From: Felis catus
Lineage: Eukaryota
Assembly (NCBI RefSeq): GCF_018350175.1
Contig: NC_058382.1
Coordinates: 15,004,001 to 15,068,000 of the forward strand
DNA length: 64,000 nucleotides
Reading direction: 5' to 3'
Shown here: positions 49,005-51,308 of the stretch, one piece after another
Layout of the letters: every line of letters begins with the position of its first letter
How positions within the stretch are numbered: position 1 is the first letter of the stretch
Notes under the pieces: generated by a model
Seen by the model: the letters and a program-made list of their open reading frames with translations, nothing else
What the model was told of the DNA's origin: nothing
Databases searched by the model: none
Position numbers and translations under genes: made by a program

Positions 49005-49070
49005 GGGCGGGGAAGGGGCGGTGATGACGTCACTTCCTCCCCCGCGGGGCCACTGGCGCGGGTTATAAGG
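49005..49070 (+). promoter_or_regulatory. CCER2 core promoter: GC boxes, palindromic CRE, ETS core, TATA
   Basis: TGACGTCA 49025-49032; CACTTCCT 49031-49038; TATAAG 49064-49069, 55-60 nt upstream of the ATG. Confidence 0.8.
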
Positions 49071-49123
49071 AGCTGCCGCGCCATCCCGCGCGGCGTCGAG
49101 CACCCTGGTCCCGACGCCCCACC

Positions 49124-49199
49124 ATGCAGAGCCGCGGGCCCGCCTCCGTGCTGCTGTTGCTGCCGCTGCCCCTGCTTCTGGCGCTGCTGCCGGGGGCCG
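49124..49199 (+). CDS. CCER2: CCER2 exon 1 (signal peptide)
   Basis: CCACCATG Kozak; Leu-rich h-region; G|gtgagt. Confidence 0.9.
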
Positions 49200-51308
49200 G
49201 TGAGTGCCAGGAACTGGAGAGGGCACCTCTGCGGCCAGCTCAGGGACCAGGGACTGGGGGTGTGGGGGGCGGGAACGGTGCACCCATTGGGGTTGGACTA
49301 GAGACTTCACGGGCTGAGCTTCCAGGTAGGGACGGTGCACCTGGCAGGTAGGCTGGGGAGAGGACCGTGGATCAGCACCGAGGACAGTGCCCGCGGGGTA
49401 CCGAGGGTACCAGCACCCATCTCCTTCCTCCACAGCCACCGCTGCTCCCTTGGCGCCAAGACCTTCCAAGGAAGAGGTGAGGAGTGCAGACCCCTTGCCC
49501 TGCCTCATCTTCCCCAGACCCTGGCCCTCCCTGACCGGCCTCCATGATCATCTCCCTCCCAAACTTCCCACTGCTCTCATTCCCCCCGTCTGCCCTACCC
49601 TCAACCTCCCCTCTGACCCTTCACGCCCAGCTGACCCGCTGTCTGGCAGAAGTGGTCACAGAAGTGCTGACGCTGGGCCAGGCCCAGAGAAGCCCCTGCA
49701 CAGCTCTCCTCCACAAAGGTAAGGAGGGCCCAGGCCCCAGAGCCTCTCGGGAGCCCCCACCCCACCCGGGGTTCCGGCCGGGGCTGCCTGGAGGAAAGGT
49801 GGTCTCATCCCAGGGCCCCCTTGCCTGGGCTGGCACGGCACGCCCGGTGTCCCGTCCGGCCTCCAGCCCCACCCTGGGGGGGTCCCTGCAGAGGTACGGG
49901 ATGGGGGCAGAGAACATCCCCCAGACCTGACCCTCCTCTCCCGGTTTTGGGCAGCCCCCCTGTGGGGCCTCGGGCAGGCCCCAGAACTCCTCCAGGTCCG
50001 GTTCCGATTCTGCCGCACAGAGAGCATCCTCTCTCTTTCCACCAGAGATGTGTGAGACAGAGCCCTACGGCTGTGTGTCCACCAAAGAGAAAGGCCTGCT
50101 GGTTGGGGATTTCAAGAAGCAAGAGGCTGGGAAGATGAGGTCCAGCCAGGAAGCGAGGGATGAGGAAGAGGCAGCCGAGAGGGCCCACAAGTCTGAGGTG
50201 CGGGAACAGACCATCCGCGAGCAGCTCCATAGCCGGCTCCACCAGGAGGAGGAGGAGGAGCAGGAGCGGGAGGAGGAGGAGGAGGAGAGGAAGAAGAGGG
50301 GGCCCGTGGAACCCTTCGAAGGCCCGTGGAAGCGGCGCCCAGAGGGTGGAGGGGGGCCCCACAAGCGAGTGGCAGAGCAGGCCAGTGACGAGGAGACAGC
50401 CCAGTTTGAGGCCGAGGAGAAGGGTGTGCAGGTGCTGGGCACGGGCCACGGCCTGTGGCAGGGGGCCGAGGCGGGTGGAGGAGAAAGGCACGAGGACTCG
50501 CCGCATCACCACCGCCTCCACCAGCCAGAAGCCGGGCCCAAGCAGGAGGAGGAGGAAGAGGCTTCCGAGAGGGAGGTGAGTGGAGGCCACGGGCAAGCGG
50601 GGTAGGCCAAACGGCCAGTGGAGTCGACCACCAAATGGGTACCAGTTGGGCCGTAAACGGCCACTGTCCACCACAAATGGACCATGGTGACCGGAACGGA
50701 CACCAGGACTAGGCAGCGACTTCCGAGCAAGGCCCCTGCTTGGCCAAGATGGCTTCCACACCAAGAGTACAGTAACCAAGATGGCCACCAGAATCGCGCG
50801 GAAGCGTCCGAGTTAGCCGCCACCGTAGTCAGTAACGCGCCGTCTGGCCACGTGAAAAGTGGCTGCCGTGCTCGGTTCGCTGGACCACAGGTGGACACCA
50901 GTGCTGGGCCGTGGAAAGAAAGACGTCCCCGTGACTGGCGGCAGCAGCCTAACCGGCCAGCACCTCACAAATGGGTCAGGGCCCCTTTACTAGCCCCACC
51001 TGCTGTCGTTGGCCGTGGCGGTCCACGCAGACTGCACCGCTGGCCACGCTGGCCAGTCTAACTCTTCCACTGCGGTCACCACCGCGGTCCGTGGGGCCTA
51101 GAGGACCGCTGCCGGCTGCCGGCATGCAAACTGACATGGCCCACATTCATGGGTGACTCCTGAGGGGGCCTGCCCTTGAAGGTGGGTGGGCTGATCAACC
51201 CGTTTCTGATCCCCCCAGGAGCATGACACGGTGCGGCTGGAGCACGTGCGAGATGAGCTAAAGAAGGCAACGGAGCTTCTGGGGGAGGAGATCAGGAGGG
51301 AGGGATGA
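49124..51308 (+). CDS. CCER2: Coiled-coil glutamate-rich protein 2, 274 aa, secreted, chromogranin-like; 5 exons
   Basis: Exons 49124-49199, 49436-49476, 49631-49718, 50046-50575, 51219-51308 total 825 nt, open; [24 protein letters not shown] and ..[17 protein letters not shown] match recalled human CCER2; position between SARS2 and NFKBIB. Confidence 0.93.
49371..49391 (+). promoter_or_regulatory. RE1/NRSE (REST binding site) in CCER2 intron 1
   Basis: ATCAGCACCGAGGACAGTGCC versus consensus TTCAGCACCnnGGACAGCGCC, canonical 2-nt spacer. Confidence 0.85.
49436..49476 (+). CDS. CCER2: CCER2 exon 2
   Basis: cacag|CCACC..GAG|gtgagg. Confidence 0.9.
49631..49718 (+). CDS. CCER2: CCER2 exon 3 (Cys loop)
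   Basis: [29 protein letters not shown]; G|gtaagg. Confidence 0.92.
50046..50575 (+). CDS. CCER2: CCER2 exon 4 (acidic body)
   Basis: accag|AGATG..GAG|gtgagt; Glu runs, dibasic sites, His cluster. Confidence 0.92.
51219..51308 (+). CDS. CCER2: CCER2 exon 5
   Basis: ccag|GAGCAT..GGATGA. Confidence 0.9.
   Translation, partial: EHDTVRLEHVRDELKKATELLGEEIRREG

Follow-up and report, generated by a model that had tools for sequence, protein, structure and literature searches.

A canonical RE1 in intron 1 of felid CCER2 beside a compact CRE-ETS-TATA promoter, and its possible role in REST-dependent silencing

Introduction

What confines the expression of CCER2, which has come into wide use to mark hair cells, Merkel cells and Merkel cell carcinoma? 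Ccer2 has been said to have no known regulators (PMC7903918). The felid CCER2 locus, which raises this question at the level of sequence, lies in a stretch of 64,000 nucleotides of the Felis catus genome (assembly GCF_018350175.1, contig NC_058382.1, positions 15,004,001 to 15,068,000 of the forward strand). This whole stretch is referred to below as the window, and all coordinates are positions within it. Intron 1 of CCER2 carries a canonical 21-bp repressor element 1 (RE1), the recognition motif of the repressor REST (also NRSF), downstream of a promoter with a cyclic AMP (cAMP) response element (CRE), an overlapping ETS core and a TATA core. On balance, REST bound to this RE1 probably silences a CCER2 promoter that would otherwise be broadly active, leaving expression only where functional REST is absent.

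A canonical RE1 in the first intron of CCER2

The sequence between 48700 and 49800 was read, motifs were scanned over 48600-49416, and the CCER2 coding region was compared exon by exon. The RE1 and the parts of the gene that surround it are the following.

49371-49391, plus strand: canonical 21-bp RE1, or neuron-restrictive silencer element (NRSE), ATCAGCACCGAGGACAGTGCC, with left half TCAGCACC, a 2-bp spacer and right half GGACAGTGCC; 171 bp past the donor of intron 1 and 44 bp before exon 2
49124-49199, plus strand: coding part of CCER2 exon 1, with the ATG at 49124, encoding the signal peptide (residues 1-25 plus one base; residues 1-25 are 100% identical to those of lion CCER2, P0001), followed by a GT donor at 49200
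49200-49435, plus strand: CCER2 intron 1, 236 bp, which holds the RE1; delimited with P0001 and by reading the sequence
49436-49476, plus strand: CCER2 exon 2, 41 nt, identified by eye

The canonical REST motif consists of two half-sites 2 bp apart, and silencing is restricted to strong motifs (PMC9903721). ATCAGCACCGAGGACAGTGCC conforms to the bipartite definition, with TCAGCACC, a 2-bp spacer and GGACAG-N-GCC, and it is truly intronic because exon 1 ends at 49199, directly before the donor, and exon 2 starts at 49436. Both half-sites, the spacer and the exon boundaries therefore bear out the preliminary description of this DNA, which had placed a canonical 21-bp RE1 here in intron 1. The RE1 core, TCAGCACCNNGGACAG, occurs once in the 64-kb window, where 0.07 copies are expected at one mismatch or fewer. 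From base composition, the exact core is expected 6e-4 times per window, and the core together with GCC 1.2e-5 times per window, corresponding to about 0.45 sites that match all 17 specified positions per 2.5-Gb genome. RE1s are most often located in introns of their target genes, and about 1,300 of them exceed the binding cut-off in the human genome (PMC1557810). The arrangement at CCER2 would be an ordinary means, hitherto undescribed for this little-studied secreted protein, of limiting expression to sensory and neuroendocrine cells.

The CCER2 motif closely resembles a working RE1, that of the human SYN1 promoter, which is printed as TTCAGCACCGCGGACAGTGCC (PMC6319552); apart from position 1 and a single base of the spacer, the two sequences are the same. 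This near-identity bears on the reading that the motif is found in the cat family only or has no function, and plays no part in CCER2 regulation. RE1 predictions made from the consensus alone include non-binding sequences (PMC1557810), which speaks for such a reading. Against it stand the resemblance to the SYN1 site, the low number of fully matching sites expected per genome, and the closeness of the motif to the promoter of a gene with orthologues reported mainly from cells in which REST is presumably inactive, and we regard it as very improbable. A scan of genome contigs for orthologous CCER2 DNA returned none, and a scan of metagenome contigs returned one (L001, 1,499 bp), which reaches 396 bp upstream of exon 4 and stops short of intron 1. 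Among the papers searched, none connected CCER2 with REST or NRSF.

The identity of the gene, which the preliminary description had likewise given as CCER2, is that of the felid orthologue. Exon 4 shares 97% identity with Panthera leo CCER2 and has about 190 mammalian CCER2 matches, and exons 1, 3, 4 and 5 are 92-100% identical to lion CCER2 (P0001) in a local tblastn comparison. With this protein, the alignments extend over 49124-49198 in exon 1, 49631-49717 in exon 3, up to about 50575 in exon 4 and over 51219-51305 in exon 5; tblastn support covers these four exons, and exon 2 with its acceptor side was read by eye in the sequence. The gene is compact (2.5 kb), and its product is small, secreted and glutamate-rich. 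Its remaining exons are as follows.

49631-49718, plus strand: CCER2 exon 3, encoding a region with a Cys-bounded loop (tblastn with P0001)
50046-50575, plus strand: CCER2 exon 4, encoding the glutamate-rich core (match to lion CCER2)
51219-51308, plus strand: CCER2 exon 5, including the stop codon (51306-51308; tblastn with P0001)

Organization of the core promoter

Upstream of the ATG, a dense set of promoter elements was located.

49025-49032, palindromic and without strand: CRE, full palindrome TGACGTCA, 31 bp upstream of the TATA core (motif scan)
49032-49038, minus strand: ETS core ACTTCCT (AGGAAGT on the minus strand), which shares the last base of the CRE
49025-49037, minus strand: overlapping ETS-CRE composite, 13-mer GGAAGTGACGTCA, a one-base variant of a published composite (motif scan)
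49005-49010 and 49016-49021, plus strand: two GC boxes, GGGCGG (motif scan)
48979-48984, minus strand: third GC box, CCGCCC (motif scan)
49064-49068, plus strand: TATA core, TATAA, 60 bp upstream of the ATG (motif scan)
48972-48977 and 48987-48992, plus strand: two E-boxes, CAGGTG and CAGCTG, 15 bp apart and 33-53 bp upstream of the CRE, just ahead of the GC boxes and the CRE

The perfect CRE overlapping an ETS core, the GC boxes and the TATA element reported earlier are thus all in place, the last of them as a core only. Transcription is predicted to start at about 49090-49100, which would put the CRE about 65 bp upstream and the RE1 about 280 bp downstream of the start. Sequencing runs that contain this DNA share 64-100% of its words, those of introns included, and look like DNA runs. 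A full CRE that precedes the predicted start by less than about 100 bp and is followed by a TATA element corresponds to the layout of cAMP-responsive TATA promoters; CCER2 may respond to CREB and to cAMP, the latter as the preliminary description predicted. The elements lie in a short CpG-rich patch (48750-49500) with a GC content of 0.68-0.70 and a CpG observed/expected ratio of 0.63-0.72. In the 64-kb window as a whole, the number of CREs is unremarkable (two seen, 0.52 expected). When the 250 bp before the ATG were shuffled with dinucleotides preserved, a CRE appeared in 0.17% of the shuffles, TATAA in 0.87% and both in none of 20,000; the significance of the CRE therefore lies in its position, which departs from chance where the window-wide count does not.

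The promoter of SYN1 resembles that of CCER2 beyond the RE1, since both contain the full TGACGTCA near the start. The order of the elements differs: SYN1 has its RE1 inside the promoter, upstream of the CRE, and CCER2 has its own downstream of the CRE, within intron 1. SYN1 is also a pan-neuronal gene that lacks a TATA box, in contrast to CCER2 with its TATAA core and its far more restricted expression in publications.

The ETS-CRE overlap has a known counterpart. In the published composite, (C/G)CGGAAGTGACGTCAC, GABPalpha and CREB bind together only when the two sites overlap exactly, and housekeeping promoters and DNase-hypersensitive sites show an enrichment of it (PMC3464117, PMC4555227). 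The CCER2 overlap is in the same exact register, and its 13-mer GGAAGTGACGTCA is identical to the core of the composite, but its ETS part reads AGGAAGT where the published one reads CGGAAGT and so lacks the 5' CG (GAGGAAGT). Accordingly, in place of the conserved 11-mer CGGAAGTGACG, CCER2 has AGGAAGTGACG, in which the register is exact, the first base differs and one CG is missing. CpG-island promoters of housekeeping genes are the typical setting of the published composite, and tissue-restricted TATA promoters are not. Because this class is enriched in housekeeping promoters, the CCER2 element looks like a generic proximal activator and not like a neuroendocrine signature; what had been described as a neuroendocrine regulatory code is, in its ETS-CRE part, a one-base variant of a housekeeping-type GABPalpha/CREB composite. 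A generic proximal activator fits a broadly competent promoter in need of a silencer.

The two E-boxes, which the preliminary description does not list, are candidate sites for basic helix-loop-helix (bHLH) factors of the ATOH1/ASCL1 type and, judged by their sequence, could carry the input suggested by expression in hair cells and Merkel cells. No match to the strict 10-mer ATOH1 motif RMCAKMTGKY (AtEAM) occurs in 48600-49416, the E-boxes included, and scans of the same interval for GFI1, INSM1, RFX and NRF1 motifs found none. An AT-rich sequence, ATGAATTAT, stands at 48950-48958 within the otherwise GC-rich promoter and is POU/homeodomain-like; it may be a POU4F3-type site. Intron 1 contains a G-rich tract (49257-49278) with a GC box, GGGCGG, at 49267, followed by an inverted CCAAT (ATTGG) at 49286, and both could be additional elements close to the promoter on the downstream side of the start.

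Orthologue expression and the proposed silencing by REST

Published human and mouse data describe a restricted pattern of expression. Ccer2 is hair-cell-specific by single-cell RNA sequencing and smFISH (PMC7221106), and it identifies the earliest immature hair cells, with its mRNA in hair cells, whereas Pvalb also marks neurons (PMC13546880). CCER2 also marks normal human Merkel cells (bioRxiv 10.1101/2025.09.09.675235), Merkel cell carcinoma (PMC9974098, PMC12623243) and a USH2A-positive subpopulation of small-cell lung cancer (PMC13481786). The neuron/endocrine-restricted expression predicted in the preliminary description agrees with these papers as far as restriction is concerned; the published pattern is narrower and follows mechanosensory cells of the ATOH1 lineage.

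This restricted orthologue expression fits silencing by REST, which we picture as follows. The core promoter combines a TATA element with a full CRE that an ETS core overlaps, and it has two E-boxes and two or three GC boxes; since such elements are usually active in many cell types, it would be expected to be broadly competent. The high-information RE1 in intron 1 most likely recruits REST. In REST-expressing cells, REST would bring its co-repressors (CoREST/LSD1/HDAC and mSin3) and the adjacent promoter would be silenced. Where REST is absent or inactivated by splicing, as in neurons, neuroendocrine cells, inner-ear hair cells and Merkel cells, the block would be lifted, and lineage activators, probably bHLH factors such as ATOH1, could then drive CCER2 transcription together with CREB/ATF. 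Use of the E-boxes by bHLH factors as these lineage activators is a reasonable guess.

Several observations weigh against this mechanism. The TATA box is present as a 5-bp core, and the full TATAWAWR consensus is not matched. In a reporter screen, only 31% of REST-bound canonical sites silenced strongly (PMC9903721). CCER2 and its neighbours were not found in the searchable portions of the supplements of REST papers. Ccer2 is listed as a marker in cultured mouse keratinocytes (PMC8489068), a misfit with tight REST silencing that we count as mild counter-evidence. Finally, Ccer2 is reported in hair cells and not in spiral ganglion neurons (PMC13546880), and loss of REST can therefore be only permissive, not sufficient, for expression.

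That published expression tracks ATOH1-lineage cells and not neurons generally is also what would be expected if restriction were set mainly by lineage activators (ATOH1, POU4F3, SOX2 and similar factors) acting at the E-boxes or at distal enhancers. The RE1 would then be a secondary lock or have little effect, and the CRE, ETS and GC elements would be generic basal elements without a cAMP switch. The two E-boxes just upstream of the CRE, the housekeeping bias of the overlapping ETS-CRE class and the lack of strong silencing by most REST-bound canonical sites in the reporter screen (PMC9903721) are in keeping with this. On the other hand, a 21-bp site so near the consensus, and separated from the predicted start by about 280 bp, probably has an effect, and the strict ATOH1 10-mer is unmatched. 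We judge control mainly by lineage activators to be unlikely, while giving it real weight; it and silencing by REST are not mutually exclusive.

Bearing of the promoter on a granin relationship

In granin promoters (CHGA, CHGB and SCG2), a TATA box is preceded by a proximal CRE, and the granin genes are targets of REST. CCER2 resembles them in the placing of its CRE, about 60-70 bp upstream of the predicted start and followed by a TATA element, and in encoding an acidic secreted protein of neuroendocrine cells. It differs from them in the ETS core that overlaps its CRE and in its published expression, which is in hair cells and Merkel cells and not broadly endocrine. These likenesses raise the alternative that the CRE-TATA-RE1 arrangement was inherited from a common ancestor with CHGA, CHGB and SCG2 and provides independent evidence that CCER2 is a granin paralogue, and the preliminary description had indeed taken the promoter architecture as independent support for a granin hypothesis.

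At the protein level, the nearest clusters to whole lion CCER2 in a language-model feature search were those of Chromogranin-A (score 0.87, 174 shared features), a result that serves as a lead only. The same search with the non-acidic N-terminal part alone (lion CCER2 residues 24-100) gave no usable match, and acidic composition may therefore explain the resemblance of the whole protein to Chromogranin-A. The Pfam Granin family (PF01271), at E-values up to 10, had no match in exons 3, 4 or 5 or in three full-length orthologues (P0001, P0021 and P0014). Exon 3 encodes the Cys-bounded loop, and the last exon ends in ...EEIRREG; Pfam Granin detects neither. The loop, C-[IL]-x-E-V-[IV]-[ST]...C, and the ...R-x-G C-terminus presumably recall the N-terminal disulfide loop and the C-terminal motif of chromogranins A and B.

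The combination of CRE and RE1 is not specific to granins, because the SYN1 promoter has the same pairing, which marks neuronal and secretory genes generally. In addition, short regulatory motifs turn over too quickly for ancient paralogy to be traced with them. Together with the negative Pfam result, the SYN1 pairing leaves little of the independent support that had been claimed: the CRE-TATA-RE1 architecture is compatible with the granin idea and lends it little independent weight, and inheritance of this architecture from a granin ancestor is improbable.

Neighbouring genes and other features of the window

CCER2 is wedged between housekeeping genes, as had been noted before. Upstream lie the exons of SARS2 on the plus strand, with a SARS2 poly(A) signal at 47124, and downstream lies NFKBIB on the minus strand, with an ankyrin/PEST exon at 52430-52708. 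The 3' end of CCER2 is marked by the following signal.

51537, plus strand: CCER2 poly(A) signal, AATAAA

This signal and that of NFKBIB (TTTATT at 51631, minus strand) are about 90 bp apart, and the two genes thus stand tail to tail with almost no spacer (51537-51636). A SINE-like (short interspersed nuclear element) repeat, the translation of which contains RERERE...GSELSAQSP, occupies 47883-48053 between SARS2 and CCER2, and copies resembling it are located at about 38.66-38.97 kb and 44.3-44.9 kb. At 35931-36083 stand 153 consecutive N, an assembly gap or a masked stretch.

Implications

CCER2 has a well-formed promoter with a high-confidence RE1 in a gene of undescribed regulation; the proposed mechanism belongs to a familiar class, and the inference to a granin relationship is weak. 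As the mechanism is textbook, what is gained is a further gene under a principle already known. With a REST site next to a promoter that is compact and probably strong, the tight restriction of CCER2 would have a simple, directly testable explanation, and the gene would be linked to REST inactivation, a pathway on which hair-cell survival and hearing depend.

A more specific proposal is that CCER2 is a direct REST target, that through its RE1 the very early activation of the gene in hair cells and Merkel cells is tied to REST inactivation (e.g. by SRRM4-dependent splicing), and that its product is a CREB-responsive, granin-like, secreted protein of ATOH1-lineage mechanosensory cells. We put this forward tentatively, as a serious possibility about which we are more doubtful than confident. 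If CCER2 is indeed a direct REST target, it would report specifically, and in compact form, on the REST status of hair cells, Merkel cells and their tumours, and the small promoter with its RE1 could serve as a cell-type-specific cassette.

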